From NCBI RefSeq assembly GCF_006345805.1, contig NC_043024.1, positions 7,564,001 through 7,628,000 of the forward strand: a DNA stretch of 64,000 nucleotides, written 5' to 3'. The translations under genes were made by a program, and so were the position numbers. The notes under the pieces are model-generated. The model saw only the letters and a program-made list of their open reading frames with translations, did no database searches and was not told the DNA's origin. Within the stretch, counting starts at the first letter, position 1. Every line of letters starts with the position of its first letter. Below, piece by piece: positions 3,070 to 59,711 of the stretch. This DNA is from Octopus sinensis. Lineage: Eukaryota.

Positions 3070-3161
3070 CGTCACACTCCAAATGACCATCCTTTTTACA
3101 GGTACATATTCTTCCGGAAAAGGCCCGAATGGATAGACCATATTATCGTAGGGACAACCAT
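3070..3161 (-). CDS. Exon of Cys-module repeat gene (module 6), with apparent 1-nt deletion
   Basis: Acceptor TTAATTTATTATAG| and donor |GTAAGT. Reads (D)GCPYDNMVYPFGPFP, and after a one-base shift RICTCKKDGHLECD, completing the same C..YPxGP..CxC..G..C module. Length 92 nt, where 93 is expected. Confidence 0.75.
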
Positions 3162-3239
3162 CTATAATAAATTAATGATTGGTGTGTACAGTGATTGAAA
3201 GGTACAAAAATAAAGGTATTCATAATTTGACTCATAAAA

Positions 3240-6200
3240 GAACACACACGCATGTATAACACATTAGCAAATTCTGTTCCACACACACAACAACACACAT
3301 GTATAACACATTAGCAAATTCTGTTCCACACACCCCCATGTATAACACATTAACAAATTCTGTTCCACACGACACACATGTTAACGTATTAGCAAATTCT
3401 GTTCCACACACACGCATGTATACCCATTAACAAATTCTGTTCACACACATACACGCATGTTATAACATATACCAAATTCTGTTTCACACATACACGCATG
3501 TATAACATATTAACAAATTCTGTTCCACACATACACACATGTATAACATATTAACAAATTCTGTTTCACACATACACGCATGTATAACATATAACAATTC
3601 TGTTCCACACATACACGCATGTATAACATATTACAATTCTGTTTCACACATACACACATGTATAACACATTACAAATACTGTTCCACACAACACGCATGT
3701 ATAACACATTAACAAATTCTGTTCCACACTCACACGCATGTATAACATATTAACAAATTCTGTTCCACCATACACGCATGTATAACTATTAACAATTCTG
3801 TTCCACACATACACGCACATGTATCATATTAAAATTCTGTTCCACACATACACGCATGTATAACACATTAGCAAATTCTGTTCACACATACACGCATGTA
3901 TAACACATTAGCAAATTCTGTCCACACACACGCATGTATAACACATTACAAATTCTGTTCCACACATACACGCATGTATAAACACATAACAAATTCTGTT
4001 CCCACATACACGCATGTATAACATATTAACAATTCTGGTCCACACACATACCGCATTATAACACATTAACAAATTCTGTTCCACACATACACGCATGTAT
4101 AACACATTAGCAAATTCTGTTCCACACTACACGCATGTATAACATTATTAACAAATTCTGTTCCACACATACACGCATGTATAACACATTAGCAAATTCT
4201 GTTCCACACACACACGCATGTATAACACATTAGCAAATCTGTTCCCACATACACGCTGTATAACACATTAGCAAATTCTTTTCCACACATACACGCATTA
4301 TAACATATTAACAAATTCTGTTCACACACACACGCATGTAACATATTAACAGTCTGTTCCACACACACACGCATGTATAACACATTAGCAAATTCTGTTC
4401 CAACCACACACGCATGTATAACATATTAACAATTCTGTTCCACACATACACGCATGTATAACACATTAACAAATTCTGTTCCACACACACGCATTTATAA
4501 CACATTAGCAAATTCTGTTCCACACACACACGCATGTATAACATATTAACAAATTCTGTTCCACACATACACACATGTATAACATATTAACAAATTCTGT
4601 TCCACACATACACGCATGTATAACACATTAACAAATTCTGTTCCACACATACACGCATGTATAACACATTAACAAATTCTGTTCCACACACACACGCATG
4701 TATAACATATTAACAAATTCTGTTACACACACACGCATGTATAACATATTAACAAATTCTGTTTCACACATACACACATGTATAACATATTAACAAATTC
4801 TGTTCCACACATACACGCATGTATAACACATTAGCAAATTCTGTTCCACACATACACGCATGTATAACACATTAGCAAATTCTGTTTCACACATACACAC
4901 ATGTATAACACATTAGCAAATTCTGTTCCACACATACACGCATGTATAACATATTAACAAATTCTGTTCCACACATACACGCATGTATAACACATTAACA
5001 AATTCTGTTCCACACATACACGCATGTATAACATATTAACAAATTCTGTTTCACACATACACACATGTATAACATATTAACAAATTCTGTTCCACACATA
5101 CACGCATGTATAACATATTAACAAATACTGTTCCACACATAGACGCATGTATAACACATTAACAAATTCTGTTCCACACATACACGCATGTATAACACAT
5201 TAGCAAATTCAGTTCCACACATACACGCATGTATAATATATTAACAAATTCTGTTTCACACATACACACATGTATAACATTAACAAATTCTGTTCCACAC
5301 ATACACGCATGTATAACATATTAACAAATTCTGTTCCACACATACACGCATGTATAACACATTAGCAAATTCTGTTCCACACATACACGCATGTATAACA
5401 CATTAACAAATTCTGTTCCACACATACACGCATGTATAACACATTAGCAAATTCTGTCCCACACACACACGCATGTATAACATATTAACAAATTCTGTTC
5501 CATACATACAAGCATGTATAACATATTAACAAATTCTGTTCCACACATACACGCATGTATAACACATTAGCAAATTCTGTTCCACACACACACACATGTA
5601 TAACATATTAACAAATTCTGTTCCACACATACACGCATGTATAACACATTAACAAATTCTGTTCCACACATACACGCATGTATAACACATTAGCAAATTC
5701 TGTTCCACACATACACGCATGTATAACATATTAACAAATTCTGTTCCACACATACACGCATGTATAACACATTAGCAAATTCTGTTTCACACATACACAC
5801 ATGTATAACATATTAAAAATTCTGTTTCACACACACACGCATGTATAACATATTAACAAATTCTGTTTCACACATACACACATGTATAACATATTAACAA
5901 ATTCTGTTTCACACACACACGCATGTATAACATTAACAAATTCTGTTCCACACACACACGCATGTATAACATATTAACAAATTCTGTTCCACACATACAC
6001 GCATGTATAAACATTAGCAAATTCTGTTCCACACACACACACGCATGTATAACACATTAGCAAATTCTGTTTCACACACACACGCATGTATAACACATTA
6101 GCAAATTCTGTTTCACACACACACGCATGTATAACACATTAGCAAATTCTGTTTCACACATACACGCATGTATAACACATTAGCAAATTCTGTTCCACAC

Positions 6201-9200
6201 ATACACATGTATAACACATTAGCAAATTCTGTTTCACACACACACGCATGTATAACACATTAGCAAATTCTGTTCCACACACACACACGCATGTATAACA
6301 CATTAGCAAATTCTGTTCCACACATACACATGTATAACACATTAGCAAATTCTGTTCCACACATATACGCATGTATAACACATTAGCAAATTCTGTTTCA
6401 CACACACACGCATGTATAATATTAGCAAATTGTTTCACACATACACACATGTATAACATATTAGCAAATTCTGTTCCACACACATGTATAACACATTAGC
6501 AAATTCTGTTTCACACATACACGCATGTATAACACATTAGCAAATTCTGTTTCACACACACACGCATGTAACACATTAGCAAATTCTGTTTCACACATAC
6601 ACGCATGTATAACACATTAGCAAATTCTGTTCCACACACACACGCATGTATAACACATTAGCAAATTCTGTTTCACACACACACGCATGTATAACACATT
6701 AGCAAATTCTGTTTCACACATACACGCATGTATAACACATTAGCAAATTCTGTTCCACACACACACGCATGTATAACACATTAGCAAATTCTTTTTCACA
6801 CATACACGCATGTATAACACATTAGCAAATTCTGTTCCACACATACACGCATGTATAACACATTAGCAAAATTCTGTTTCACACACACACGCATGTATAA
6901 CACATTAGCAAATTCTGTTTCACACATACAGGCATGTATAACACATTAGCAAATTCTGTTCCACACACACACGCATGTATAACACATTAGCAAATTCTGT
7001 TTCACACATACACGCATGTATAACACATTAGCAAATTCTGTACCACACACACACGCATGTATAACACATTAGCAAATTCTGTTTCACACACACACGCATG
7101 TATAACACATTAGCAAATTCTGTTTCACACATACACGCATGTATAACACATTAGCAAATTCTGTTCCACACACACACGCATGTATAACACATTAGCAAAT
7201 TCTGTTCCACACACACACGCATGTATAACACATTAGCAAATTCTGTTTCACACATACACGCATGTATAACACATTAGCAAATTCTGTTCCACACACACAC
7301 GCATGTATAACACATTAGCAAATTCTGTTCCACACACACACGCATGTATAACACATTAGCAAATTCTGTTCCACACACACACGCATGTATAACACATTAG
7401 CAAATTCTGTTTCACACACACACGCATGTATAACACATTAGCAAATTGTTTCACACATACAGGCATGTATAACACATTAGCAAATTCTGTTTCACACACA
7501 CACGCATGTATAACACATTAGCAAATTCTGTTTTACACATACACGCATGCATAACACATTAGCAAATTCTGTTCCACAGACATACGCATGTATAACACAT
7601 TAGCAAATTCTGTTTCACACACACACGCATGTATAACACATTAGCAAATTCTGTTTGACACATACACGCATGTATAACACATTAGCAAATTCTGTTCCAC
7701 TCATACACGCATGTATAACACATTAGGAAATTCTGTTCCACACACACACACACATGTATAACACATTAGCAAATTCTGTTTCACACATACACGCATGTAT
7801 AACACATTAGCAAATTCTGTTTCACACACACACGCATGTATAACACATTAGCAAATTCTGTTTCACACATACACGCATGTATAACACATTAGGAAATTCT
7901 GTTCCACACACACACGCATGTATAACACATTAGCAAATTCTGTTCCACACATACACGCATGTATAACACATTAGCAAATTCTGTTCCACACACACACGCA
8001 TGTATAACACATTAGCAAATTCTGTTTCACACATACACGCATGTATAACACATTAGCAAATTCTGTTTCACACATACACGCATGTATAACACATTAGCAA
8101 ATTCTGTTCCACACACACACGCATGTATAACACATTAGCAAATTCTGTTTCACACATACACGCATGTATAACACATTAGCAAATTCTGTTCCACACACAC
8201 ACGCATGTATAACACATTAGCAAATTCTGTTTCACACACACACGCATGTATGACACATTAGCAAATTCTGTTTCACACATACACGCATGTATAACACATT
8301 AGCAAATTCTGTTCCACACACACACGCATGTATAACACATTAGCAAATTCTGTTTCACACACACACGCATGTATAACACATTAGCAAATTCTGTTTCACA
8401 CATACACGCATGTATAACACATTAGCAAATTCTGTTCCACACATACACGCATGTATAACACATTAGCAAATTCTGTTCCACACACACACGCATGTATAAC
8501 ACATTAGTAAATTCTGTTTCACACACACACGCATGTATAACACATTAGCAAATTCTGTTCCACACATACACGCATGTATAACACATTAGCAAATTCTGTT
8601 TCACACATACACACATGTATAACATTTTAACAAATTCTGTTTCACACATACACGCATGTATAACATATTAACAAATTCTGTTCCACACACACACGCATGT
8701 ATAACACATTAGCAAATTCTGTTCCACACATACACGCATGTATAACATATTAACAAATTCTGTTCCACACATACACGCATGTATAACACATTAGCAAATT
8801 CTCTTTCACACATACACACATGTATAACATATTAACAAATTCTGTTTCACACACACACGCATGTATAACATATTAACAAATTCTGTTTCACACATACACA
8901 CATGTATAACATATTAACAAATTCTGTTTCACACACACACGCATGTATAACATTAACAAATTCTGTTCCACACACACACGCATGTATAACATATTAACAA
9001 ATTCTGTTCCACACATACACGCATGTATAACACATTAGCAAATTCTGTTCCACACACACACGCATGTATAACACATTAGCAAATTCTGTTTCACACACAC
9101 ACGCATGTATAACACATTAGCAAATTCTGTTTCACACACACACGCATGTATAACACATTAGCAAATTCTGTTTCACACATACACGCATGTATAACACATT

Positions 9201-12200
9201 AGCAAATTCTGTTCCACACATACACGCATGTATAACACATTAGCAAATTCTGTTTCACACACACACGCATGTATAACACATTAGCAAATTCTGTTCCACA
9301 CACACACACGCATGTATAACACATTAGCAAATTCTGTTCCACACATACACGCATGTATAACACATTAGCAAATTCTGTTCCACACATATACGCATGTATA
9401 ACACATTAGCAAATTCTGTTTCACACACACACGCATGTATAACATATTAGCAAATTGTTTCACACATACACACATGTATAACATATTAGCAAATTCTGTT
9501 CCACACACATGTATAACACATTAGCAAATTCTGTTTCACACATACACGCATGTATAACACATTAGCAAATTCTGTTTCACACACACACGCATGTATAACA
9601 CATTAGCAAATTCTGTTTCACACATACACGCATGTATAACACATTAGCAAATTCTGTTCCACACACACACGCATGTATAACACATTAGCAAATTCTGTTT
9701 CACACACACACGCATGTATAACACATTAGCAAATTCTGTTTCACACATACACGCATGTATAACACATTAGCAAATTCTGTTCCACACACACACGCATGTA
9801 TAACACATTAGCAAATTCTTTTTCACACATACACGCATGTATAACACATTAGCAAATTCTGTTCCCACACTACACGCATGTATAACACATTAGCAAATTC
9901 TGTTTCACACACACACGCATGTATAACACATTAGCAAATTCTGTTTCACACATACAGGCATGTATAACACATTAGCAAATTCTGTTCCACACACACACGC
10001 ATGTATAACACATTAGCAAATTCTGTTTCACACATACACGCATGTATAACACATTAGCAAATTCTGTACCACACACACACGCATGTATAACACATTAGCA
10101 AATTCTGTTTCACACACACACGCATGTATAACACGTTAGCAAATTCTGTTTCACACATACACGCATGTATAACACATTAGCAAATTCTGTTCCACACACA
10201 CACGCATGTATAACACATTAGCAAATTCTGTTCCACACACACACGCATGTATAACACATTAGCAAATTCTGTTTCACACACACACGCATGTATAACACAT
10301 TAGCAAATTCTGTTCCACACATACACGCATGTATAACACATTAGCAAATTCTGTTCCACCCACACACGCATGTATAACACATTAGCAAATTCTGTTCCAC
10401 ACACACACGCATGTGTATAACACATTAGCAAATTCTGTTTCACACATACACGCATGTATAACACATTAGCAAATTCTGTTCCACACACACACGCATGTAT
10501 AACACATTAGCAAATTCTGTTTCACACATACACGCATGTATAACACATTAGCAAATTCTGTTCCACACACACACGCATGTATAACACATTAGCAAATTCT
10601 GTTCCACACACACACGCATGTATAACACTTTAGCAAATTCTGTTTCACACACACACGCATGTATAACACATTAGCAAATTCTGTTCCACACATACACGCA
10701 TGTATAACACATTAGCAAATTCTGTTCCAGACACACACGCATGTATAACACATTAGCAAATTCTGTTTCACACATACACGCATGTATAACGCATTAGCAA
10801 ATTCTGTTCCACACACACACGTATGTATAACACATTAGCAAATTCTGTTTCACACATACACGCATGTATAACACATTAGCAAATTCTATTCCACACACAC
10901 ACGCATGTATAACACATTAGCAAATTCTGTTTCACACACACACGCATGTATAACACATTAGCAAATTCTGTTCCACACACACACGCATGTATAACACATT
11001 AGCAAATTCTGTTTCACACATACACGCATGTAAAACACATTAGCAAATTCTGTTCCACACACACACGCATGTATAACATATTAGCAAATTCTGTTTCACA
11101 CATACACGCATGTATAACACATTAGCAAATTCTGTTCCACACACACACGCATGTATAACACATTAGCAAATTCTGTTTCACACATACACGCATGTATAAC
11201 ACATTAGCAAATTCTGTTCCACACACACACGCATGTATAACACATTAGCAAATTCTGTTTCACACATACACGCATGTATAACACATTAGCAAATTCTGTT
11301 CCACACACACACGCATGTATAACACATTAGCAAATTCTGTTTCACACATACACGCATGTATAACACATTAGCAAATTGTTCCACACACACACGCATGTAT
11401 AACACATTAGCAAATTCTGTTTCACACACACACGCATGTATAACACATTAGCAAATTCCGTTTCACACATACACGCATGTATAACACATTAGCAAATTCT
11501 GTTCCACACACACACGCATGTATAACACATTAGCAAATTCTGTTTCACACACACACGCATGTATAACACATTAGCAAATTCTGTTCCACACACACACGCA
11601 TGTATAACACATTAGCAAATTCTGTTTCACACATACACGCATGTATAACACATTAGCAAATTCTGTTCCACACACACGCATGTATAACACATTAGCAAAT
11701 TCTGTTCCACACATACACGCATGTATAACACATTAGCAAATTCTGTTCCACACACAAACGCATGTATAACAAATTAGCAAATTCTGTTTCACACACACAC
11801 GCATGTATAACACATTAGCAAATTCTGTTTCACACATACACGCATGTATAACACATTAGCAAATTCTGTTCCACACACACACGCATGTATAACACATTAG
11901 CAAATTCTGTTTCACACATACACGCATGTATAACACATTAGCAAATTCTGTTCCACACACACACGCATGTATAACACATTAGCAAATTCTGTTTCACACA
12001 CACACGCATGTATAACACATTAGCAAATTCTGTTTCACACATACACGCATGTATAACACATTAGCAAATTCTGTTCCACACACACACACGCATGTATAAC
12101 ACATTAGCAAATTCTGTTCCACACACACACACACATGTATAACACATTAGGAAATTCTGTTTCACACACACACGCATATATAACACATTAGCAAATTCTG

Positions 12201-15200
12201 TTCCACACATACACGCATGTATAACACATTAGCAAATTCTGTTCCACACAAAGACGCATGTATAACACATTAGCAAATTCTGTTCCACACACACACGCAT
12301 GTATAACACATTAGCAAATTCTGTTTCACACATACACGCATGTATAACACATTAGCAAATTCTGTTCCACACACACACGCATGTATAACACATTAGCAAA
12401 TTCTGTTTCACACACACACGCATGTATAACACATTAGCAAATTCTGTTTCACACACACAGGCATGTATAACACATTAGCAAATTTGTTTCACACATACAC
12501 GCATGTATAACACATTAGCAAATTCTGTTTCACACACACACCATGTATAACACATTAGCAAATTCTGTTTCACACATACAGGCATGTATAACACATTAGC
12601 AAATTCTTTTTACACATACACGCATTGCATAACACATTAGCAAATTCTGTTCCACACACATACGCATGTATAACACATTAGCAAATTCTGTTTCACACAC
12701 ACACGCATGTATAACACATTAGCAAATTCTGTTGCACACACACACACGCATGTATAACACATTAGCAAATTCTGTTTCCACACACATACAGGCATGTATA
12801 ACACATTAGCAAATTCTGTTTACATACACAAACATACACGCATGCATAACACACTTAGCAAAAATTCATTGTTTCCACACACATACGCATGTATAACACA
12901 TTAGCAAATTCTGTTTCACACACACACCATGTATAAACACATTAGCAAATTCTGTTTCACACATCACACGCATGTATAACACATTAGCAAATCTGTTCCT
13001 TCCACACACACACGCATGTATAACTATTAGCAAATTCTGTCCACACACACACACATGTATAACACATTAGCAATTCTGTTTCACACACACACGCATGTAT
13101 AACACATTAGCAAATTGTGTTTCACACACACACATCATGTATAACACATTAGCAAATTCTGTTCCACACATACACGCATGTATAACACATTAGCAAATTC
13201 TGTTCCACACATACACGCATGTATAACACATTAGCAAATTCTGTTCCACACATACACGCATGTATAACATTAACAAATTCTGTTCCACACATACACGCAT
13301 ATATAACACATTAGCAAATTCTGTCCACACACACACGCATGTATAACACATTAGCAAATCTGTTCCACACACACACGCATGTATAAAACATTAGCAAATT
13401 CTGTTTCACACACACACACGCATGTATAGCACATGATAACACATTAGCAAATTCTGTTCCACACATACACGCATGTATAACACATTAGCAAATTCTGTTT
13501 CACACATACACACATGTATAACATTAACAAATTCTGTTCCACACATACACGCATGTATAACATATTACAAATTGTTCCACACACACACGCATGTATAACA
13601 CATTAGCAAATTCTGTTCCACACATACACGCATGTAATACATATTAACAAATTCTGTTCCACACATACACGCATGTATAACACATTAGCAAATCTCTGTC
13701 ACCATACACCATGTATAACATATTAACAAATTCTGTTTCACACACACACGCATGTATAACCTATTAGCAAATTCTGTTTCACACATACACACATGTATAA
13801 CTTTAACAAATTCTGTTTCACACACACACGCATGATAACATATTAGCAAATTCTGTCCACACACACAACGCAAATTCTGTTCCAAACACGCATGTATAAC
13901 ACTTAGCAAATTCTGTTCACACATACCGCATGTATAACACATTAGCAAATTCTGTTCCACACACACACGCATGTATAACACATTAGCAAATTCTGTTTCA
14001 CACACACACGACGCATAAAAACACGCATTTTAACACATTAGCAAATTCTGTTCCACACACACACGCATGTATACACATTAGCAAATTCTGTTCCACACAC
14101 CATGCTTCATAACACATTATGCAAATCCTGTTAACAGCATTCCATAACACACGCATGTATAAAACTAGCACATTAGCAATTCTGTTTCACACACACACAT
14201 GTACAACGCGCATGTACAATCAGATATACACATTAGCAAATTCTGTTCCACACACACACGCATGTATAACACATTAGCACATTCTGTTTCACACACACAC
14301 GCATGTATAACACATTAGCAAATTCTGTTCACACATACAGCATGTATAACACATTAGCAAATTCTGTTCCACACACACAACGCATGTATACACATTAGCA
14401 AATTCTGTTTCACACATAACATGCGCTGTATAACACATTAGCAAATTCTGTTCCACACATACACGCATGTATAACATATTAGCAAATTCTGTTCCACACA
14501 TACACGCATGTATAACACATTAGCAAATTCTGTTCCACACAACACGCATGTATAACAATTAGCAATTCTGTTCCACACACACACGCATGTATAACACATT
14601 AGCAAATTCTGTTTCACACACACACACGCATGTATATCACATTAGCAAATTCTGTTCCACACACATCGCATGTATAACACATTAGCAAATTCTGTTTCAC
14701 ACATACACATGTATAACATATTAACAATTCTGTTTCACACATACACGCATGTATAACATATTAACAAATTCTGTTCCACACACACACACGCATGTATAAC
14801 ACATTAGCAAATTCTGTTCCACACATACACGCATGTATAACAATTAACAAATTCTGTTCCACACATACACGCATGTATAACACATTAGCAAATTCTGTTT
14901 CACACATACACACATGTATAACATATTAACAAATTCTGTTTCACACACACACACAAAACACAAGCCGCATGTATAACATATTAACAAATTCTGTTTCACA
15001 CTACACACATGTATAACATTAACAAATTCTGTTCCACACATACACACATGTATAACATATTAACAAATTCTGTTTCACACACACACGCATGTATAACATA
15101 TTAACAAATTCTGTTTCACACATACACACATGTATAACATATTAACAAATTCTGTTTCACACATACACACATGTATAACATATTAACAAATTCTGTTCCA

Positions 15201-16001
15201 CACATACACACATGTATAACATATTAGCAAATTCTGTTTCTCACACACACACACGCATGTATAACATATTAACAAATTCTGTTCACACTACACCATGTAT
15301 ACATATTAACAAATTGTTTTCACCATACACACATGTATAACATATTGCAAATTCTGTTCACACACACACGCATGTATAACATATTAGCAAATTCTGTCCA
15401 CACATAACGCCTGTATAACACATTAGCAATTCTGTTCCACACACACACGCATGTATAACATATTAACAATTCTGTTCACACACACACACGCATGTATAAC
15501 ATATTAACAAATTCTGTTCCACACACACACGCATGTATAACACATTAGCAAATTCTGTTTCACACACACCACACGCATGTATAACACATTACAAATTCTG
15601 TTTCACACACCCCACGTATAACAATTAGCCACTCCAACACACGCATGTATAACATATTAGCAAATTCTGTTTCCACACATACACGCTGTATAACATTAGC
15701 AAATTCTGTTCAACACACACACACGCATGTATAACATATTAACAAATTCTGTTTCACACACACACGCATGTATAACATATTAACAAATTCTGTTCCACAC
15801 ATACACGCATGTATAACACATTAGCAAATTCTGTTTCACACACACACGCATGTATAACATATTAGCAAATTCTGTTTCACACATACACGCATGTATAACA
15901 CATTAGCAAATTCTTTTTCACATATACACGCATGTATAACACATTAGCAAATTCTGTTCCCACACACACAAGCATGTATGACACATTAGCAAATTCTGTT
16001 C
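3240..16001. repeat. 41-bp satellite, ~310 copies
   Basis: Unit AACACATTAGCAAATTCTGTTCCACACATACACGCATGTAT (e.g. CCACACATA at 4561 and 4602). Confidence 0.99.
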
Positions 16002-16071
16002 CCTCTATGATTAGCTCCTTGTGGGCAATAAAGAAATAAGGATCTTGGTCTTTAAGTTAACATATGCATAC

Positions 16072-16870: not shown

Positions 16871-17291
16871 GGGCGGCAAGCTGGCAGAACCGTTAGCACG
16901 TCGGGCAAAATGCATAGCGGTATTTCGGCTGCTGTTACGTTGTGAGTTCAAATTCCGCAGAGGTCGACTTTGCCTTTCATCCTTTCGGGTCGATAAATTA
17001 AGTACCAGTTACACACTGGGGTCGATGTAATCGACTTAATACCTATGTCTGTCCTTGTTTGTCCCCTCTGTGTTTAGCCCCTTGTGGGTAATAAAGAAAT
17101 AGGTATTTCGTCTGTCTTTTTACGTTCTGAGTTCAAATTCCGCCGAGGTCGACTTTGCCTTTCATCCTTTCGGGGTCGATAAATTAAGTACCAGTTACAC
17201 ACTGGGGTCGATGTAATCGACTTAATACCTATGTCTGTCCTTGTTTGTCCCCTCTATGTTTAGCCCCTTGTGGGCAGTAAAGAAATAGGTG
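16871..17291 (+). mobile_element. SINE family B, one full copy plus a tandem partial copy
   Basis: GGGCGGCAAGCTGGCAGAACCGTTAGC head, GAGTTCAAATTCCG B box; the body is repeated at 17102-17291. Confidence 0.85.
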
Positions 17292-19296: not shown

Positions 19297-19425
19297 CTTC
19301 AGGATCATTCATAAATATCGTTGGTGGTTCATCACCTTTACATGTAATTTCTCCACTCATTGTACAATTACAGTCTGTGTCAGGAATTGGACCAATTGGA
19401 TAAAATATCCCTTCATATAGACATA
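19297..19425 (-). CDS. Exon of Cys-module repeat gene (module 5)
   Basis: Acceptor CTTTCTTATTCTGTTACAG|, donor G|GTATTT. 129 nt, phase 1-1, open: (V)CLYEGIFYPIGPIPDTDCNCTMSGEITCKGDEPPTIFMNDPE. Confidence 0.88.
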
Positions 19426-20465: not shown

Positions 20466-20588
20466 CATCTATCGGCACATCTTGTATACCATCTTTACAT
20501 ACAACTGACGTGTTAGCTGTGCAGTTACAGTTTGTGTTAGGAATTGGTCCAACAGGAAACCTTTCGCCACCGTGAAGGCAGAAAGGAA
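20466..20588 (-). CDS. Exon of Cys-module repeat gene (module 4)
   Basis: Acceptor CTTTCTTTTCTTTACAG|, donor G|GTATTT. 123 nt, phase 1-1: (V)PFCLHGGERFPVGPIPNTNCNCTANTSVVCKDGIQDVPID. Confidence 0.88.
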
Positions 20589-20739: not shown

Positions 20740-23700
20740 TAATGAGGAATGGAGGTGGTTCTAAGGATGGAGTACAACAGAGGGGAGAGAGCATGGCTGG
20801 AGGAAGATAATGAGGAATGGAGGTGGTTCTAAGGATGGAGTATAACAGAGGGGAGAGAGCATGGCTGGAGGAAGATAAAAAGGAATGGAGGTGGTTCTAA
20901 TGATGGAGGATGGAGTATAAAAGAGGGGAGAGAGAGCATGGCTGGAGGAAGATAAAAAGGAATGGAGGTGGTTCTAATGATGGAGGATGGAGTATAACAG
21001 AGGGGAGCGAGCATGGCTGGAGGAAGATAAGGAATGGAGGTGGTTCTAATGATGGAGGATGGAGTATAACAGAGGGGAGCGAGCATGGCTGGAGGAAGAT
21101 AATAAGGAATGGAGGTGGTTCTAATGATGGAGGATGGAGTATAACAGAGGGGAGAGAGCATGGCTGGAAGAAGATAAAAAGGAATGGAGGTGGTTCTAAT
21201 GATGGAGGATGGAGTATAACAGAGGGGAGAGAGCATGGCTGGAAGAAGATAAAAGGAATGGAGGTGGTTCTAATGATGGAGGATGGAGTATAACAGAGGG
21301 GAGAGAGCATGGCTGGAGGAAGATAATAAGGAATGGAGGTGGTTCTAATGATGGAGGATGGAGTATAACAGAGGGGAGAGAGCATGGCTGGAGGAAGATA
21401 AAAGGAATGAGGTGGTTCTAATGATGGAGGATGGAGTATAACAGAGGGGAGAGAGCATGGCTGGAAGAAGATAAAAAGGAATGGAGGTGGTTCTAATGAT
21501 GGAGGATGGAGTATAACAGAGGGGAGAGAGCATGGCTGGAGGAAGATAAAAGGAATGGAGGTGGTTCTAATGATGGAGGATGGAGTATAACAGAGGGGAG
21601 AGAGCATGGCTGGAAGAAGATAATAAGGAATGGAGGTGGTTCTAATGATGGAGGATGGAGTATAACAGAGGGGAGAGAGCATGGCTGGAGGAAGATAATA
21701 AGGAATGGAGGTGGTTCTAATGATGGAGGATGGAGTATAACAGAGGGGGAGAGCATGGCTGAAAGAAGATATAAAGGAATGGAGGTGGTTCTAATGATGG
21801 AGGATGGAGTATAACAGAGGGGAGAGAGCATGGCTGGAGGAAGATAAAAAGGATGGAGGTGGTTCTAATGATGGAGGATGAGTATAACAGACGGAGAGAG
21901 CATGGCTGGAAGAAGATATAAGGAATGGAGGTGGTTCTAATGATGGAGGATGAGTATAACAGAGGGGAGAGAGCATGGCTGGAGGAAGATAAAAAGGAAT
22001 GGAGGTGTTCTAATGATGGAGGATGGAGTATAACAGAGGGGAGAGAGCATGGCTGGAAGAGATAAAAAGGAATGGAGGTGGGTCTAATGATGGAGGATGG
22101 AGTATAACAGAGGGGAGAAGCATGGCTGGAGGAAGATAATGAGGATGGAGGTGGTTCTAAGGATGAGTATAACAGAGGGGAGAGAGCATGGCTGGAGGAA
22201 GATAAAAAGGAATGGAGGTGGTTCTAAGGATGGAGTACACAGAGGGGAGAGAGCATGGCTGGAGGAAGATAAAAAGGAATGGAGGTGGTTCTAATGATGG
22301 AGGATAACAGAGGGGAGAGAGCATGGCTGGAGGAAGATAATGAAAATGGAGGTGGTTCTAAGGATGGAGGATGGAGTATAACAACGAGGGGAGAGAGCAT
22401 GGCTGGAAGAAGATATAAAGGAATGGAGGTGGTTCTAATGATGGAGGATGGAGTATAAAAGAGGGGAGAGAGCATGGCTGGAAGAAGATAAAAAGGAATG
22501 GAGGTGTTCTAATGATGATGGAGGATGAGTATAACAGAGGGGAGAGAGCATGGCTGGAAGAAGATAAAAAGGAATGGAGGTGGTTCTAATGATGGAGGAT
22601 GGAGTATAACAGAGGGGAGAGAGCATGGCTGGAGGAAGATAATAAGGAATGGAGGTGGTTCTAATGATGGAGGATGGAGTATAACAGAGGGTAGAGAGCA
22701 TGGCTGAAGAAGATAAAAAGGAATGAGAGGTGGTTCTAATGATGGAGGATGGAGTATAACAGAGAGAGAGAGCATGGCTGGAGGAAGATAAAAGGAATGG
22801 AGGTGGTTCTAATGATGAGGATGGAGTATAACAGAGGGGAGAGAGTATGGCTGGAGGAAGATAAAAAGGAATGGAGGTGGTTCTAATGATGGAGGATGGA
22901 GTATAACAGAGGGGAGAGAGAATGGCTGGAAGAAGATAAAAAGGAATGGAGGTGGTTCTAATGATGGAGGATGGAGTATAACAGAGGGGAGAGAGCATGG
23001 CTGGAAGAAGATAAAAAGGAATGGAGGTGGTTCTAATGATGGAGGATGGAGTATAACAGAGGGGAGAGAGCATGGCTGGAGGAAGATAAAAAGGAATGGA
23101 GGTGGTTCTAATGATGGAGGATGGAGTATAACAGACGGGAGAGAGCATGGCTGGAAGAAGATATAAAGGAATGGAGGTGGTTCTAATGATGGAGGATGGA
23201 GTATAACAGAGGGGAGAGAGCATGGCTGGAGGAAGATAAAAAGGAATGGAGGTGGTTCTAATGATGGAGGATGGAGTATAACAGAGGGGAGAGAGCATGG
23301 CTGGAAGAAGATAAAAAGGAATGGAGGTGGGTCTAATGATGGAGGATGGAGTATAACAGAGGGGAGAGAGCATGGCTGGAGGAAGATAATGAGGAATGGA
23401 GGTGGTTCTAAGGATGGAGTATAACAGAGGGGAGAGAGCATGGCTGGAGGAAGATAAAAAGGAATGGAGGTGGTACTAAGGATGGAGTACAACAGAGGGG
23501 AGAGAGCATGGCTGGAGGAAGATAAAAAGGAATGGAGGTGGTTCTAATGATGGAGGATAACAGAGGGGAGAGAGCATGGCTGGAGGAAGATAATGAAGAA
23601 TGGAGGTGGTTCTAAGGATGGAGGATGGAGTATAACAGAGGGGAGAGAGCATGGCTGGAAGAAGATAAAAAGGAATGGAGGTGGTTCTAATGATGGAGGA

Positions 23701-40771: not shown

Positions 40772-40915
40772 TTATTTTCGTTTTTGGTTCCCTAAGTTTC
40801 TCGGGTAGTCCAGGTTGTCCAGGTTGTTTACAAATCACTTTACCATCCTTTCTATACTCACAAATTTCAGTCTTAATTAGTCCAGGGTTATTCCGTGGAT
40901 GCGAACGAAGGCACA
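40772..40915 (-). CDS. Exon of Cys-module repeat gene (module 1, divergent)
   Basis: Acceptor TTATGTTTCTTTATTACAG|, donor A|GTAAGT. 144 nt, phase 1-1, open: CLRSHPRNNPGLIKTEICEYRKDGKVICKQPGQPGLPEKLREPKTKI (third Cys replaced by Tyr). Confidence 0.72.
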
Positions 40916-40963: not shown

Positions 40964-41570
40964 CATCATCATCATCGTTTAGCGTCCGCTTTCCATGCTA
41001 GTATGGGTTGGACGGTTCAACTGGGGTCTGGGAAGCCAGAAGGCTGCACCAGGCTCCAGTCTGATCTGGCAATGTTTCTACGGCTGGATGCTCTTCCTAA
41101 CGCCAACCACTCCGTGAGTGTAGTGGGTGCTTTTTACGTGCCAGGCGAGGCTGGCAAACGGCCATGATCGGATGGTGCTTTTTATGTGCCACCTGCACGG
41201 GGTCCAGGCGAGGCTGGCAAATGGCCATGATCGGATGGTGCTTTTTACGTGCCACCGGCACAGGGGCCAGGCGAGGCTGGCAAACGGCCACGAACGGATG
41301 GTGCTTTTTACGTGCCACCTGCACGGGGGCCGGGCGAGGCTGGCAAATGGCCATGATCGGATGGTGCTTTTTACGTGCCACCGGCACAGGGGCCAGGCGA
41401 GGCTGGCAAACGGCCACGAACGGATGGTGCTTTTTACGTGCCACCTGCACGGGGGCCGGGCGAGGCTGGCAAACGGCCACGATCGGATGGTGATTTTTTA
41501 CATGCCACCGGCACAGGGGCCAGGCAAGGCTGGCAAACGGCCATGATTGGATGGTGCTTTTTATGTGCCG
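40964..41570 (-). mobile_element. RTE 3' tail with ~7 tandem ~60-bp UTR units
   Basis: (CAT)n tail, GGATGCTCTTCCTAACGCCAACCACTCC, then repeats of GCCAGGCGAGGCTGGCAAACGGCCACGA.CGGATGGTG. Confidence 0.85.
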
Positions 41571-43189: not shown

Positions 43190-43191
43190 GT

Positions 43192-48325: not shown

Positions 48326-48343
48326 TATATATATATATATATA

Positions 48344-48900
48344 TCATCATCATCGTTTAACGTCCGCTTTCCATGCTAGCATGGGTTGGACGGTTCAACT
48401 GGGGTCTGGCAAGCTCGAAGGCTGGACCAGGCCAGTCAGATGTGGCAGTGTTTCTACAGCTGGATGCCCTTCCTAATGCCAACCACTCCGAGAGTGTAGT
48501 GGGTGATTTTATGTGCCACTGACACAGGTGCCAGATGAGGCTGGCAGACGGCCACGCTCGGATGGTGTTTTTATGTGCCACCGACACAGGTGCCAGACGA
48601 GGCTGGCAGACGGCCACGCTCGGATGGTGTTTTCTTATGTGCCAGACGAGGCTGGCGAACGGCCACGCTCGGATGTTGTTTGTTACGTGCCCACAGCACG
48701 GAGGCCAGTTGATGCGGTACTGGCTACGGTCACGTTCGGATGGTTTTCTTATGTGCCACCCACAAGGATACAGATTCCATTGATGTTCATCTATTTTTAT
48801 TTGGTTTGATTTTCACTTGCCTCAACAGGTCTTCACAAGTGTCTCAAGGAGGAAGGTATGCACAGGTGAACTGACTACGTCCCAGGTAGGGGCCACGGGT
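48344..48900 (-). mobile_element. RTE 3' UTR and tail fragment
   Basis: Reverse complement of the 56100-57688 type sequence, including the (GAT)n tail. Confidence 0.9.
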
Positions 48901-48960
48901 TATGGCTTCACTAGTCTTGTCGGGTCTTCTCACGCACAGCATACTTATATATATATATAT

Positions 48961-49354: not shown

Positions 49355-49386
<32 letters not shown>

Positions 49387-49391
<5 letters not shown>

Positions 49392-49600: not shown

Positions 49601-49612
49601 TTTATTATTATT

Positions 49613-49643
<31 letters not shown>

Positions 49644-49650
<7 letters not shown>

Positions 49651-50249: not shown

Positions 50250-50512
50250 GTATATATATATATAGTCAATAATAATAAGGGTAAAATTAATTAATTAGTA
50301 ATTAATAATTTTACCAAGCAGTGTTCAGTATGTAAAAGGACCATTTCCGGTAAATTTAAACATTACTTTATATAATTAGGGTTCAGCAAAAAAAAAATTG
50401 CGTTACCACACACAAAACTTTTAGAAATAGCAGCCAAAGAATTTAGCTATTTCCCCTAATATAAGAAGAGTCTACCAGACAATGTATACTCAAAAACAAT
50501 TCAGCATATACT

Positions 50513-52771: not shown

Positions 52772-55700
52772 GCCCGGTTTTCGCGGTGCACCCGCCCTCC
52801 CACCCCCACCACCGGTACAGGAAGTCCTAAATTTTTCTCATCCTTGTCTCCCTTATACACTCAAAGTCTTACGCCACCCCCACCTCCTTCCATAAAAGGT
52901 AGTGTTCAGTCATTGCAAGATATGTTTAGTGTTGTATACGAGGTTGAACTTAAGTTCCATTGTTTGTCTATGAATACTGCCAAACGCGAGTTTTCTTTTC
53001 AGGTACATGACGCTATTAGGACCAATACCACTTCCACCCCCACCCACAGCCTCAGGGTTGGCACCCTCAACGTCGGCACACTGAAAGGCAGATCTGGCGA
53101 GATAGTTGAATTGCTTGAACGGAGGTGGGTTGATATATGCTGCATTCAAGAAGTGAGGTGGAGAGGAGGTTCTGCTAGGTTCCTCACAGGCAAAGGACAG
53201 AGGTACAAGATTTTCTGGGCTGGGAATACTGACGGAGTCGGGGGTGTGGCATGCTTATCGCCGAAAAATGGGTAGATAAGGTAATCGAGGTAGTCAGAGT
53301 AAGTGACAGAATAATTAAGATTAGAGTGCTCCACCATAGTTTAGCAACTATTATATCGGCCTATGCCCCTCAGCCAGGGCTACCTGATGGACAGAAAGAC
53401 TGTTTCTATGACACCCTACTGCAGACCACATCATTGACGAACGACAGGGACCTTCTCTTTGTGGCTGGTGACTTCAATGGGCATGTTGGACGACGTGCTG
53501 GGGGCTTCCATGGCGTGCATGGAGGCTACGGTTATGGTTCCCGCAACGAGGAGGGAACCAGGCTGCTGGAGTTCTGCGATGCGAATAGTCTTATGATTTG
53601 CAACACTAACTTCAGGAAACCGACAAGCCACCTGGTCACCTACCGATCGGGCCGGCATACTAGCCAAATCGACTACATCCTTGCCAGAAAAAGGGAAAGA
53701 TGGCTGCTTATAAATGCCAAAACCTTCCCAAGTGAAGAATGCACCCCACAACATAGACTGGTAGTTAGTGACTTTAGGATCAGGACTAAGAGGGCGACTA
53801 GAAGACGACCAACATGGAGAAGAAGGGTCTGGAAGCTTAAAGACCCTGCGAATGGACAGAGATTTAGAGATATGTTATTTGAAGCTTTAGACGAAATGGA
53901 AGGGAGTATAAGCTACGCATGGGGTAGAAGACAACTGGACGCTTCTGAGGGACAACCTGCTGAAAGCCGCTGACCAGATCTGGGCTGGTGCAAAGTCCCC
54001 TTAAGACCCAAAATAACGTGGTGGTGGAACAATATTGTTGACAGGGCTATTAGACAAAAGAAACAGGCTTGGAAGGCCTGGAAGAAGACGGTGGTAGCAG
54101 GGAAGTGTATCAGTCTGCCAGAAGGGAAGCCAGGAGACAGGTCTATCTAGCCAGAGGGGAAGCAGAGAGGAAAAATTTGCCAATGTCCTGCGTCGTGAGG
54201 ATGAAAGACTTGAGGTATTTCGTGTTGCAAGACAGTGTGTGAGAGAGAATCGTGACGTGGTAGGAGAGAAATGTGTTCGCAAGGAGGACGGTTCACTTGC
54301 ACTTAATGAGGGTGCAAAGAGAGAGACTTGGAGACGCCACTATGATAGGTTGCTGAATGAAGAAGAAATGAATGGGATAAAGAGAGTCTGCCGAATGTCG
54401 ACCCAACAGAGGGACCAGCAATCCGAGTTAACAGTTCCTTAGTAGATAAGGCAATTAGAAGCATGAAAACAGGGAAAGCCCCAGGCCCATCAGGAATTAC
54501 TGCAGAGATGCTCAAAATATCTGGTGGTGTCGGCTATAGCTTAGTCACCCGTATAGTTAACCAGGTGATACACGAGGGGGTCATACCCAATGACTGGTGT
54601 AGCAGCATAATAGTCAACTGCTACAAAGGTAAAGGCGACGCCCTAGAGACAAATAACTACAGGGGCATCAAGCTGCTGGATCAGGTAATGAAGGTTACGG
54701 AGAGGGTTGTAGCCGAACTAATTAGAGAGAGAGTTACCTTAGATGATATGCAGTTGGGTTCGTGCCAGGGAAAAGTACTACTGATGCTATATTCCTGGTA
54801 AGACAGCTGCAGGAGAAATACCTAGCAAAGATAAGCCCTTGTACCTGGCTTTTGTTGACTTGGAGAAAGCCTTTGACAGGGTCCCCCGGTCCCTTATCTG
54901 GTGGTCAATGAGGAAACTAGGGATAGAAGAATGGTTGGTGAGAGCTGTGCAAGCCATGTACAGAGACGCTGCTAGTAAGGTGAGGGTGGGAACGAGTACA
55001 GTGAAGAATTCCGGATAGAGGTTGGGTCCACCAAGGTTCAGTCCTCAGTCCCCTCCTATTTATCATAGTCCTCCAGGCAATAACGGAGGAATTCAAGACA
55101 GGTTGCCCCTGGGAGCTCCTCTATGCTGATGACCTTGCTCTAATTGCTGAGTCACTATCAGAACTGGAGGAGAAGTTCCAGGTGTGGAAACAAGGATTAG
55201 AATCGAAGGGCCTTAGAATCAACCTAGCCAAAACCAAAGTTCTAATAAGTAGGAGGTAGATCAATCACAAACGCCTTCAGGTAGATGGCCCTGCTCGATC
55301 TGTAAAAAAGGTGTAGGTAGAAACTCTATAAGATGCACCAAGTGTAAGCTATGGACACATAAGAGGTGCAGCAATGTCAAAGGAAGGCTAACTAGGAAAA
55401 TAGTTTTTGTCTGTGGCAAATGCTCAGGAGCAATAAACACTGGAAATATGCAGAGACCAACTTCTGCCACGTTCCAGGGAGACAAACTAGAAGTAGTTGA
55501 TAGCTTCCGCTACCTAGGAGACCAAGTCAGTAGCGGGGGTGGGTGTGCTGAAAGTGTAACTGCTAGAGTAAGAATAGCCTGGGCAAAGTTTAGAGAGCTC
55601 TTACCCCTGCTGGTGACAAAAGGCCTCTCGCTCAGAGTAAAAGGCAGACTGTATGATGCATGTGTACGTACAGCCATGCTACATGGTAGTGAAACATGGG

Positions 55701-57688
55701 CCGTGACTGCTGAGGATATGCGTAAGCTCGCAAGAAATGAAGCCAGTATGCTCCGATGGATGTGTAATGTCAGTGTTCATAATCGTCAGAGTGTAAGTTC
55801 CTTGAGAGAAAAGCTGAACCTAAGAAGCGTCAGTTGTGGCGTGCAAGAGAGACGGCTGCGCTGGTATGGTCATGTGACAAAAAAGGCTGAAGATAGTTGT
55901 GTGCAAAAGTGCTACACCCTAGCAGTGGAGGGAACCTGTGGAAGAGGTAGACCCAGGAAAACCTGGGACGAGGTGGTGAAGCACGACCTTCGAACTTTAG
56001 GTCTCACTAAGGAAATGTCTAGAGACCGAGACCTATGGAAGTATGCTGTGCATGAGAAGACCCGGCAAGACTAGTCAGGCCATAACCCGTGGCCCCGACC
56101 TGGGACGTAGTCAGTCCTGTGCATACCTTCCTTCTTGTGACACTTATGAAGACCTGTTGAGGCAAGTGAAAATCAATCAAATCAAAACAAATCAAAATAG
56201 ATGAACATCAGTGGAATTGTATTCTTTGTGGTACCAGTGCCGGTGGCACACAAGAAAACCACCCAAACGTGGCCGTAACCAGTACCGCATCGACTGGCCT
56301 CCGTGCTGTGGGCACAACAAACACCATCCGATCGTGGCCGTTCGCCAGCCTCATCTGGCACCTGTGCCGGGGCACATAAAGACACCATCCGAAGACCCGG
56401 CGACGTAGTCAGTCCACCTGTGCATACCTTCCCTCTTATGACACTTGTGAAGACCTGTTGAGGCAAGTGTGTGACACTTGTGAAGACCTGTTGAGGCAAG
56501 TGAAAATCAAACCAAATCAAAATAGATGAATATCAATGGAATTTGTATCTTTGTGGTTCCAGTACCGGTGGCACACAAGAAAACCATCCGAAGTGGCCGT
56601 AGCTGGTACCGCATCGACTGGCCTCCGTGCTGTGGGCACAACAAACACCATCTGATCGTGGCCGTTCGCCAGCCTCACCTGGCACCTGTGTCGGTGGCAC
56701 ATAAAAACACCATCCAAAGACCCGGCGACGTAGTCAGTCCACCTGTGCATACCTTCCCTCTTATGACACTTGTGAAGACCTGTTGAGGCAGAGGCAAGTG
56801 TGTGACACTTTGTGAAAACCTGTTGAGGCAGAGGCAAGTGTGTGACACTTGTGGAGACCTGTTGAGGCAAGTGTGTGACACGCGTGACACTTGTGAAGAC
56901 CTGTTGAGGCAAGTGAAAATCAAACCAAATCAAAATAGATGAACATCAATGGAATTTGTATCTTTGTGGTTCCAGTACCGTGGTGGCACACAAGAAAACC
57001 ATCCGATCGTGGCCGTTCGCCAGCCACATCTGGCACCTGTGTCGGTGGCACATAAAGACACCATCCGAAGACCCGGCGACGTAGACAGTCCACCTGTGCA
57101 TACCTTCCTTCTTGTGACACTTGTGAAGACCTGTTGAGGCAAGTGACACTTGTGAAGACCTGTTGAGGCAAGTGAAAATCAAATCAAATCAAAACAAATC
57201 AAAATAGATGAGCATAAATGGAATTTGTATCTTTGTGGTACCAGTGCCGGTGGCACACAAGAAAATCATCCGAACGTGGCCGTAGCCAGTACCGCATAGA
57301 CTGGCCTCCGTGCTTGGGGACGTACCAAACACCATCCGATCGTGGCCGTCCGCCAGCCTCATCTGGCACCTGTGTCGGTGGCACATAAAAACACCATCCG
57401 AGCGTGGCCGTCTGCCAGCCTCGTCTGGCACCTGTGTCGGTGGCACATAAAAACACCATCCGAGCGTGGCCGTTCGCCAGCCTCGTCTGGCACCTGTGTC
57501 GGTGGCACATAAAATCACCCACTACACTCTCGGAGTGGTTGGCGTTAGGAAGGGCATCCAGCTGTAGAAACACTGCCAGATCTGACTGGCCTGGTGCAGC
57601 CTTCGGGCTCCCCAGACCCCAGTTGAACCGTCCAACCCATGCTAGCATGGAAAACGGACGCTAAATGATGATGATGATGATGATGATA
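52772..57688 (+). mobile_element. Near-full-length RTE-clade LINE (APE + RT + PHD-like insertion), frameshifted, with expanded 3' UTR
   Basis: LRVGTLNVGTL, ICCIQEVRW, ISAYAPQ, DFNGHVG, SQIDYIL, KAPGPSGI, NYRGIKLL, FVDLEKAFDRVP, SVLSPLLF, ELLYADD, FRYLG, RRLRWYGHV, GRPRKTW; stop at 56074; GGCGTTAGGAAGGGCATCC...(GAT)n tail. Confidence 0.96.
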
Positions 57689-57914
57689 TATATATACTGG
57701 GTGCAACATACACATTTAGCCATTATTTAAACATAAGAATTTATGTATTATTCAACCATAAATTGAAATAATTATTTGTGAAAATAGTTGCAAACATATA
57801 ACATTTATTAACGTTCTTTTGTCTACCCTTAATTAAATATGGTGATTTAAGCAAAACATGAAAATGGCTGGTATAAAGAATTGTGAGGCTATAAAACACA
57901 GTAGAATGTGCGCA

Positions 57915-58772: not shown

Positions 58773-58779
58773 TCAAGTG

Positions 58780-58990
58780 GTGTGATCAAACTGACAAAAT
58801 CCAGTTCCAGGAAGAAAGCATCTAGTTCGTATCAGGTGAATCAAGCAGAGCCATCAATAAGAAGGCGAAGAGAATTCCACAAAGAAGCATAAGGAAGCTA
58901 TCAAGGAAGTGGTGAACAAGTCTTGCACTTCAGTTGAGAAAAGATTAAGGGCAATGGTGAAAACAAAGGATGGTCATTTTGAATTGTAAA
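58780..58990 (+). mobile_element. Probable Tc1/mariner transposase C-terminal remnant
   Basis: SCTSVEKRLRAMVKTKDGHFEL* resembles the Tc1 C-terminal R-x-x-A-V-x4-GGH-x-E motif; no catalytic motif visible. Confidence 0.45.
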
Positions 58991-59197
58991 TACATGCGTA
59001 AAATATTGACAAAAAATATAACAGTCAACTTATAAGCATTCATTAACCAAATACAAAAATCTTTCTATTTATGATAAACTGAATAATGGGTAAATGAATA
59101 CACTACACCCAGGATATATATCGTTCCATAGTTAAAACAATGGACAAGACTGTTCCAGCAAAATGATGGACATCAAAGACAAAAGAAGTATATATAT

Positions 59198-59602
59198 CTA
59201 TTTCTTTATTACCCACAAGGGGCTAAACAGAGGGGACAAACACAGACAGACAAAGGGATCAAGTCGTTTACATCGACCCCGGTGCGTAACTGGTACTTAA
59301 TTTATCGACGCCGAAAGGATGAAAGGCAAAGTCGACCTCGGCGGAATTTGAACTCAGGCAGACAAAATACCTATTTCTTTATTACCCACAAGGGGCTAAA
59401 CACAGAGGGGACAAACACGGACAGACAAAGGGATCAAGTCGTTTACATCGACCCCAGTGCGTAACTGGTACTTAATTTATCAACCCCGAAAGGATGAAAG
59501 GCAAAGTCAACCTCGGCGGAATTTGAACTCAGAACGTAACAACAGACGAAATACGGCTACGCATTTCGCCCGGCGTGCTAACGTTTCTGCCAGCTCGCCG
59601 CC
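59198..59602 (-). mobile_element. SINE family B, one full copy plus a tandem partial copy
   Basis: Reverse complement of the 16871-17291 type sequence. Confidence 0.85.
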
Positions 59603-59684
59603 TTGTATATATATCACTGACTTGTGCGTAAGGCATTTAGATGCCCGAAATTATAAAGTCTATGAATTATAAAATCAAACTTAC

Positions 59685-59711
59685 GGTAGGGTGGTTCACA
59701 AAGATATTCCG
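59685..59711 (-). CDS. Candidate 27-nt micro-exon of the Cys-module gene
   Basis: Strong acceptor TTTTTCTTTTCTACTTTGCAG| and donor C|GTAAGT; phase 1-1; encodes xEYLCEPPY and joins in frame to the 40915 exon. Confidence 0.5.

Follow-up and report, generated by a model that had tools for sequence, protein, structure and literature searches.

The question raised by the stretch of Octopus sinensis DNA analysed here (64,000 nucleotides, positions 7,564,001 to 7,628,000 of contig NC_043024.1 in assembly GCF_006345805.1, referred to below as the window) is what kind of protein is encoded by seven short, cysteine-bearing intervals that lie far apart on its minus strand among large arrays of repeats. 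All seven are exons of a single gene, LOC115225789, which is listed in the Octopus sinensis RefSeq annotation as "uncharacterized protein". We are confident, though short of certain, that the best explanation overall is a secreted, cysteine-rich chain of reduced pacifastin-like modules, each specified by its own exon, the sequence of which is changing fast. An earlier note, made from the sequence alone, had described the gene as hidden, a description that has to be withdrawn since the gene is annotated with six isoforms; it is uncharacterised but already public, and what is new here is the placement of its module and the exon-specific acceleration of its change.

The gene and its exons

When joined, the seven exons form a single open frame of 259 codons, and the spliced peptide matches isoform X2 of LOC115225789 (XP_036370470.1) with 100% identity over 100% of its length. 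The gene is represented by a cluster of six RefSeq predicted isoforms of 391–437 aa and spans ~103 kb of the minus strand, of which the 3' ~61 kb lies within the window and codes for residues ~166–436 of isoform X2 as judged by tblastn. Beyond coordinate 64000, the full-length model has a hydrophobic, signal-like N-terminus (MNFVFILSTLLVICGLRYAGG), a 6-Cys domain (CIYKNKDYVEGDTFIDGCKVCYCNGYRTMRCVKIC) and another Cys-rich stretch, and, to judge by synteny with Octopus vulgaris, no more than a few hundred bases separate the preceding exon from the end of the window. The chain is Cys-rich and of ~46 kDa, the mature X1 form containing 36 Cys residues and seven N-x-S/T sequons with an acidic pI of ~5.1. 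No dibasic processing sites were found in the inter-module linkers, so that the chain probably remains whole. We infer that the protein is secreted, the signal peptide being judged from sequence alone, and it is probably N-glycosylated; the sequons NGT, NCT, NLS and NTS listed in the earlier note are present, and its suggestion of a secreted or surface glycoprotein fits the signal-like N-terminus and the numbers of Cys residues and sequons.

On re-reading, each of the seven intervals has an AG acceptor and a GT donor on the minus strand and is open in its phase-1 frame, and the lengths of all but 3070–3161 (92 nt) are divisible by three; the strand, borders and phases first reported agree with the RefSeq model. 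The micro-exon at 59685–59711 (27 nt, encoding (P)EYLCEPPY(L), phase 1-1, with AG/GT borders), previously put forward only as possible, is real: it is included in all six RefSeq isoforms, PEYLCEPPY lies within the match to XP_036370470.1, and the O. vulgaris copy has AG/GT borders and is identical at 26 of 27 nt. Exon M0 (40772–40915) encodes a degenerate 3-Cys module (CLRSHPRNNPGLIKTEICEYRKDGKVIC) with the spacing C-x16-C-x9-C, without CxC, followed by a Pro/Lys-rich linker. Exon M1 (37096–37236) encodes a 4-Cys module (CNNFGKEVPVGPILGTDCECFENGTISC) and a linker bearing a fifth Cys, and exon M4 (19297–19425) a 4-Cys module (CLYEGIFYPIGPIPDTDCNCTMSGEITC) and linker. Between them lie two cassette exons with 4-Cys modules, M2 (33740–33862; CLQGGDMYPVGPIPDTNCTCTANLSIEC), which is skipped in isoform X4, and M3 (20466–20588; CLHGGERFPVGPIPNTNCNCTANTSVVC), which is skipped in isoforms X5 and X6; small shifts at the ends of M2 and M3 account for the other isoform differences. 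M2 and M3 are recent duplicates. Since the module exons are of phase 1-1, the frame would survive the duplication or the skipping of any of them, and the number of modules would be adjustable by both routes. In isoforms X2, X3 and X6 the 3' ends of 20466–20588 or 33740–33862 fall 3 or 15 nt early, and the donor that these early ends imply in the window sequence is AT (directly after a G), not GT.

The same organization is found in two related octopods. The window and the O. vulgaris locus (L001, OX597840.1) are collinear, with an identity of roughly 90–98%, and the orthologous exons of the latter all have AG/GT borders. In Argonauta hians (L002, BAAFZT010000075.1) the layout is the same but compact, with the 6-Cys domain, two intervening exons, a Cys-bearing micro-exon and at least six module exons in a row, separated by introns of 1–3 kb as against up to 16 kb in Octopus. 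The Argonauta module exons start two bases before the first Cys codon, after AG (phase 1), and for each of them phase-1 GT donors that give lengths divisible by three are available as candidates by sequence. One module to an exon in phase 1-1, the combination by which the exon-shuffling class is tested, is thus found throughout the exons of the window and of O. vulgaris, and the layout to which the earlier note drew attention is conserved in both O. vulgaris and Argonauta.

Existing gene models of these relatives differ from this organization in several places. In its deposited model the O. vulgaris ortholog, CAI9741643, which bears the UniProt name 'Kielin/chordin-like protein', lacks three module exons and runs on into the intron at two points, past the micro-exon and past its last exon. 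The O. vulgaris assembly also contains two identical M3-type exon copies 1.5 kb apart and an extra degenerate M4-type copy that is absent from the O. sinensis window, so that the number of modules differs between the two assemblies. The L001 positions bearing on these points are 53142–53230, 70870–70992, 72001–72124, 80428–80550, 81965–82087, 83114–83242 and 89883–89975. In Argonauta hians one gene has apparently been annotated as two (10001–15172, and 17016 onward), the second model beginning at an ATG inside the linker of module exon 16915–17082.

The last exon, which carries module M5, requires separate treatment. As annotated it extends over 3031–3161 (tblastn of the RefSeq protein covers 3162–3034 at 100% identity), the model reading through the GT at 3069–3068 for 13 codons to a TAG at 3031–3033; the stop codon, which had been thought to lie outside the identifiable region, is therefore within the window. 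Within 3070–3161 the two halves of a module are present in two frames, the gene frame giving the first half (GCPYDNMVYPFGPFPEE) and the neighbouring frame the second (ICTCKKDGHLECD). In O. vulgaris the orthologous exon, which shares the AG acceptor and the gtaagt, is one base longer (93 nt) and encodes an intact single-frame module (DGCSYDNVDYPVGPFPGGICICKNDGHLECD); it is this frameshift that leaves M5 with a length not divisible by three. Whether a true frameshift or a single-base error of the assembly, the change in O. sinensis M5 affects the final ~15 codons only. When O. vulgaris M5 is read in the module frame through gtaagt, a stop is reached after two codons, so that this exon could be terminal in O. 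vulgaris too. On the 3' side of M5 both species have a 123-bp satellite (window 1185–2937); in the window an assembly gap of 100 N (1085–1184) adjoins it, indicating that the 3' neighbourhood of the gene is incompletely assembled.

The module and its affinities

The Octopus modules M1–M4 fit the consensus C-x7-P-x-G-P-x5-C-x-C-x7-C. The earlier note had ascribed a consensus of this kind to all six module exons; it stands for these four, M0 being a degenerate 3-Cys version and M5 divided between two frames, and the overall pattern is retained with a last spacing of x7 in place of x6. When the regular expression C-x(5-12)-G-[PL]-x(3-8)-C-x-C-x(5-8)-C was run on six frames of the 64 kb, it matched only M1, M2, M3 and M4, with no chance matches, so that the pattern is no chance feature of repeat-rich sequence. 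Across 14 modules from three species the four Cys residues and one Gly are invariant and the following Ile nearly so. The GPIP motif that the earlier note gave for the module holds for Octopus and is not family-wide, Argonauta modules retaining only G-x-I.

Pfam searches at E<=10 with the spliced peptide, with the full protein, with sub-fragments and with the 14 modules one by one gave no relevant model (a DUF1496 match at E~1 was taken as chance), in keeping with the earlier statement that no named family could be assigned. Searched exhaustively with phmmer, 1.84 billion representative proteins yielded six matches in all, and the family itself is detectable in octopods only: the matches include the O. 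vulgaris ortholog, an Argonauta fragment with modules, and a partial O. bimaculoides protein comprising the N-terminal part only, at 56% identity. The three others are repeat proteins, identified by Pfam as Pacifastin_I (E down to 9e-107), VWC (E 4e-87) and FnI_RECK, which match only residues ~53–99, that is, the 6-Cys domain encoded outside the window. When this N-terminal domain was compared by hhalign with the Pfam-verified repeats of these three proteins, the result was 97.2% (E 4e-11), and the profile of the 14 modules compared with 17 of the repeats gave 83.8% (E 7.8e-6). In a shuffle control of the module comparison the real score of 23.4 was reached by none of 200 column shuffles of the target profile (8.8 +/- 2.2, maximum 17.7). 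The hhalign register places the first Cys of the module on C1 of the repeats, opens a three-column gap over C2-N-x, aligns C-x-C with C3-x-C4 and places the last Cys on C5. Comparison of the modules with the gene's own N-terminal domain gave a weak 3.7% in the same register.

The pacifastin consensus is C1-x9-12-C2-N-x-C3-x-C4-x2-3-G-x3-6-C5-T-x3-C6, with bridges 1–4, 2–6 and 3–5 and the reactive site between C5 and C6 (PMC2689174). The modules lack this six-Cys scaffold, having four Cys residues, the gap at C2-N-x and an end before C6; nor do they have the C5–C6 reactive-site loop, as there is no C6 in M1–M5 and a variable linker follows the last Cys. Neither the modules nor the full protein reaches the Pacifastin_I gathering score, whereas homology to verified Pacifastin_I members is indicated by hhalign for the modules and the N-terminal domain alike. 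The latter does have six Cys residues, with three residues from C5 to C6 in four of four octopod sequences, one below the consensus. The ten-Cys VWC domain, with its C2-x-x-C3-x-C4 motif and CC-x-x-C end, is likewise not found, the modules having C-x-C only and no exon encoding a second subdomain. A 2026 survey describes a long-hairpin 'ancestral' pacifastin type, rich in Gly and aromatic residues, that is common in Mollusca and often forms part of matrix-associated multidomain proteins (PMC13388995), and our module, with 16 residues separating its first Cys from its second, fits the long-hairpin description. With C2 and C6 missing and the partners of bridges 1–4 and 3–5 kept, the protease-binding loop is lost and the other two bridges are possible; we predict two disulfides per module, first to third and second to fourth Cys. 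We conclude that the module is a four-Cys derivative of the pacifastin/VWC-N-subdomain fold that lies outside both Pfam definitions. The truncated VWC/FN1-like 4-Cys module suggested previously can accordingly be specified as a pacifastin/VWC-N-subdomain repeat minus C2 and C6.

The structure prediction for one module that the earlier note had called for was made with the pacifastin fold, a three-stranded antiparallel sheet knotted by disulfides, as the standard of comparison. An AlphaFold2 model of M4, made with a 7-row module alignment as input, has a pLDDT of ~91 over its first 30 residues (the core) and contains two β-hairpins. In a Foldseek search of PDB (350,542 chains), four of the nine top matches were pacifastin inhibitors (2f91_B, 2xtt_A, 2vu8_I and 1wo9), all matches being non-significant (best E 2.3, TM 0.26–0.44), as is expected of a module of only 30 residues. 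A single-sequence AlphaFold2 run on the whole protein was uninformative (pLDDT 34). Other searches added no relatives. When the module alignment was run as a profile against PDB sequences, nothing but glucokinases appeared, at E~7, and these were judged spurious. With the 51-column module alignment as query, the word-indexed search of a set of 5.8 billion proteins yielded one candidate and no match. With a conceptual six-module Argonauta peptide the same search yielded the known Argonauta fragment alone, neither the downstream Argonauta model nor any decapod relative being recovered.

One of the three repeat proteins found by phmmer is encoded next door. CAI9741642 ('kielin chordin', O. vulgaris), whose accession is adjacent to that of the ortholog CAI9741643, is the product of a Pacifastin_I repeat gene situated ~10 kb upstream of the ortholog in head-to-head orientation; the two may belong to a local cluster of paralogues. 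The neighbouring gene (L004, OX597840.1 6889274–6934899) has three repeats, with the loops C-T-K-M-L-C, C-T-F-M-F-C and C-T-K-V-L-C.

Rate of change between species

The rate of change was estimated from 227 codons of the micro-exon and M0–M4 that can be aligned between O. sinensis and O. vulgaris. These contain 29.5 non-synonymous and 1.5 synonymous differences, giving dN 0.058, dS 0.010 and dN/dS 5.7 (binomial p 0.005 against the share of non-synonymous sites). M0, for example, differs by six substitutions, none of them synonymous, that alter five codons. In a comparison with 600 nt of intron around each exon whose flanks align cleanly (the micro-exon, M0, M1, M3 and M4), the intron flanks differ by 0.3–1.5% (~1% in general) and the exons by 0.7–9.8%; dN is about five times the intron rate. 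A similar excess is seen between the duplicates M2 and M3, the exons of which differ at 20 of 123 nt (19 non-synonymous and one synonymous) as against 4 of 135 in the adjoining homologous intron (Fisher p 4e-4). The changes lie within the first hairpin and beyond the last Cys, and no Cys, G-x-I core residue or splice site is altered between the species. The N-terminal 165 residues differ from those of O. vulgaris by nine substitutions and one gap.

This is the pattern that positive diversifying selection would be expected to produce. A simple loss of constraint is disfavoured, since exons under relaxed constraint would change at the same rate as the introns, with a ratio near one.

Function, surroundings and known systems

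Several observations weigh against the reading of LOC115225789 as a secreted, fast-changing chain of pacifastin-like modules, and should be considered together. Pfam is silent on all modules even at E<=10, and the link between module and pacifastin consists of a single profile comparison (83.8%) and non-significant Foldseek matches. The estimate of rate comes from two very close species and ~31 differences, and gene conversion among paralogous module exons could cause clustered differences limited to exons, M3 alone accounting for 12. The last exon is frameshifted here, so that the O. sinensis product may be aberrant at its C-terminus or the assembly wrong. Finally, a search of the literature under the locus and accession names of LOC115225789 found no paper.

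Our current working hypothesis is that the reduced pacifastin-like module would keep the long N-terminal β-hairpin together with equivalents of C1, C3, C4 and C5. Modules of this kind would not work as canonical Laskowski-type inhibitors, and may instead be rigid display scaffolds that show fast-changing surface residues to a co-evolving partner. The setting would be an arms race in saliva or venom, immunity or reproduction, the partner being proteases or other proteins of prey, microbes or gametes. That the protein is a binding or decoy protein in such a setting is a plausible proposal to which we would give slightly less than even chances. We offer with a little more reserve the fuller proposal that the module is an undescribed, octopod-restricted domain type, a 'four-cysteine mini-pacifastin' without inhibitor loop, and that the gene encodes a rapidly diversifying secreted effector of saliva or venom, immunity or reproduction. 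Under this proposal, and with the same reserve, the effector would owe its variety to positive selection acting on exposed residues of hairpin and linker, together with the duplication and skipping of symmetric cassette exons. Since pacifastins are produced by the octopus posterior salivary gland (PMC7693380), this is the first candidate tissue for expression of LOC115225789.

Among the alternatives, a structural or matrix protein built as beads on a string, comparable to the VWC-only 'kielin/chordin-like' Argonaut eggcase proteins, survives best, though we consider it unlikely. In the Argonaut eggcase matrix no class is more abundant than the VWC-only proteins (bioRxiv 10.1101/2021.07.10.451900), the long-hairpin pacifastin-like domains of molluscs often occur in matrix-associated multidomain proteins (PMC13388995), and a homologue is present in Argonauta; the lack of dibasic sites in the linkers, leaving the chain probably whole, would also suit such a role. 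A dN/dS well above 1 and an acceleration specific to exons are, however, unexpected for a scaffold protein, low-complexity and mineral-binding stretches are absent, and no proteomic link to LOC115225789 was found.

More doubtful still is a classical multi-headed pacifastin serine-protease inhibitor, each module of which would block a protease via a canonical reactive loop. The distant homology of the modules to Pacifastin_I repeats would agree with this, as would a fold nearest to the SGTI/SGPI inhibitors (by non-significant matches), and the rapid change just past the last Cys resembles reactive-site hypervariability; moreover, pacifastins are known from the octopus posterior salivary gland (PMC7693380) and the C5-T-K-M-L-C6 loops of the neighbouring Pacifastin_I gene fit the K-M pairs typical of molluscs (PMC13388995). 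We rate this alternative low because the reactive loop is missing: without C2 and C6 the modules have neither a C5-T-x3-C6 loop nor the 2–6 bridge that anchors it, even the N-terminal 6-Cys domain has only three residues from C5 to C6 in all four octopod sequences, and there is no Pfam Pacifastin_I match.

It is very improbable that the gene is a decaying one, or a pseudogene, in O. sinensis, with its amino-acid changes reflecting relaxed constraint only. The last module exon is indeed out of frame relative to O. vulgaris and three predicted isoforms need non-GT donors, but that frameshift is limited to the final ~15 codons and is possibly an assembly error, whereas every Cys, the G-x-I core, the seven reading frames and the AG/GT sites are intact in both species and dN is ~5.7 times dS and about five times the intron rate, not in a ratio near 1. 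Still less probable is a kielin/chordin-like regulator of bone morphogenetic proteins (BMP), as the automatic UniProt name of the O. vulgaris ortholog would have it. The N-terminal domain does resemble the first half of VWC, but a complete 10-Cys VWC domain occurs nowhere in the protein and Pfam gives no VWC match, and its restriction to octopods among the 1.84 billion representative proteins and its very fast evolution are unlike those of conserved developmental regulators. That the exons are open by chance or are pieces of a protein encoded by a transposon, as the satellites and transposon debris making up most of the surrounding 64 kb might suggest, was rejected as scarcely conceivable on the strength of the 100% RefSeq identity and the occurrence of the module pattern nowhere else in the six frames, the same exons and phases being found in O. 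vulgaris and Argonauta and the relatives being cellular Cys-rich secreted proteins.

The surroundings themselves bear out the earlier description of exons spread among repeats, as analysis with Tandem Repeats Finder (TRF) showed the introns to be dominated by large satellites with extreme strand skews. The M4–M5 intron contains 12.7 kb of a satellite with a 41-bp unit (3242–16002; GC skew about -0.5) and the M2–M3 intron 11.6 kb of one with a 75-bp unit (20832–32456; GC skew about +0.75), the latter followed by a 174-bp array (32567–33592). Both satellites occupy the same introns in O. vulgaris, in much shorter form (about 2.8 kb and 5.9 kb, respectively). Further arrays of 63/64-bp, 150-bp and 237-bp units are present in the window. 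A 62–64-bp unit (GCCAGCCTCGTCTGGCACCTGTGTCGGTGGCACATAA) forms arrays at 37431–39241, 41140–41569, 48502–48644 and 57327–57519; as these four arrays occur in both orientations, they may represent a dispersed element containing tandem repeats. At 52844–53973 on the plus strand, two overlapping ORFs match Exo_endo_phos_2 (E 1e-6, above the gathering score) and Exo_endo_phos (E 7e-4, below it), and we read this region as a LINE-type retrotransposon fragment in a large intron. On the minus strand a tRNA-like sequence (63008–63079) that narrowly exceeds the Rfam gathering score was found at the edge of a tandem array with a 237-bp unit (63018–63784), which probably reflects copies of a tRNA-derived short interspersed element (SINE).

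Returning to the pacifastin-like chain, a module that no domain database covers can now be placed as a reduced offshoot of the pacifastin/VWC-N-subdomain fold, and the disulfide lost from it is exactly the one that builds the protease-binding loop. Its exon-specific acceleration marks LOC115225789 as a candidate arms-race protein. Proteins of pacifastin type have previously been recorded in octopus venom glands and also, in the form of VWC-like proteins, in the Argonaut eggcase. The locus is also a clean example of the tuning of module number via symmetric exons, and its analysis has shown that the gene models of O. vulgaris and Argonauta hians are faulty and that the O. sinensis sequence probably carries a frameshift or an error of assembly.

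Among known systems the module is closest to Pacifastin_I (PF05375) in its long-hairpin 'ancestral' molluscan form. With it the module would share a small all-β disulfide knot, and it has in common a long Gly/aromatic hairpin after C1, C-x-C, a Gly that often stands before the last Cys, and an arrangement as tandem repeats in what is probably a secreted protein. It differs in having four Cys residues, not six, and in being without the C2-N motif, C6 and the C5-T-x3-C6 loop; our protein is without a Pfam match and without dibasic sites, and Pro-x-Gly-Pro-Ile-Pro is specific to Octopus. With the N-terminal subdomain of VWC (PF00093; chordin, kielin and crossveinless-2) the module has in common the arrangement C...G...C-x-C...G...C and, in the predicted model, two short β-hairpins. 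In VWC subdomain 1, the C1–C4 and C3–C5 bridges would remain after loss of C2, since C2 pairs with the second subdomain. That second subdomain, with its CC-x-x-C, is absent from our module, Pfam gives no VWC match and nothing points to BMP binding. FN1-like modules such as FnI_RECK (PF25028), on which the related 6-Cys repeats also score, have a Cys spacing unlike that of our modules and show no direct sequence or fold match with them; they would resemble them in consisting of two-disulfide stacked β-hairpins of ~30–40 residues, encoded by symmetric exons and repeated in extracellular proteins.

For the rate of change, the closest comparison is with the snake-venom phospholipase A2 (PLA2) and conotoxin genes, which are secreted families with accelerated exons. 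LOC115225789 differs from them in encoding a multi-module chain, not a short processed peptide, and there is no evidence that it is a venom component. It shares with them exons that change several-fold faster than introns, differences that are nearly all non-synonymous, and a Cys framework that is kept throughout.

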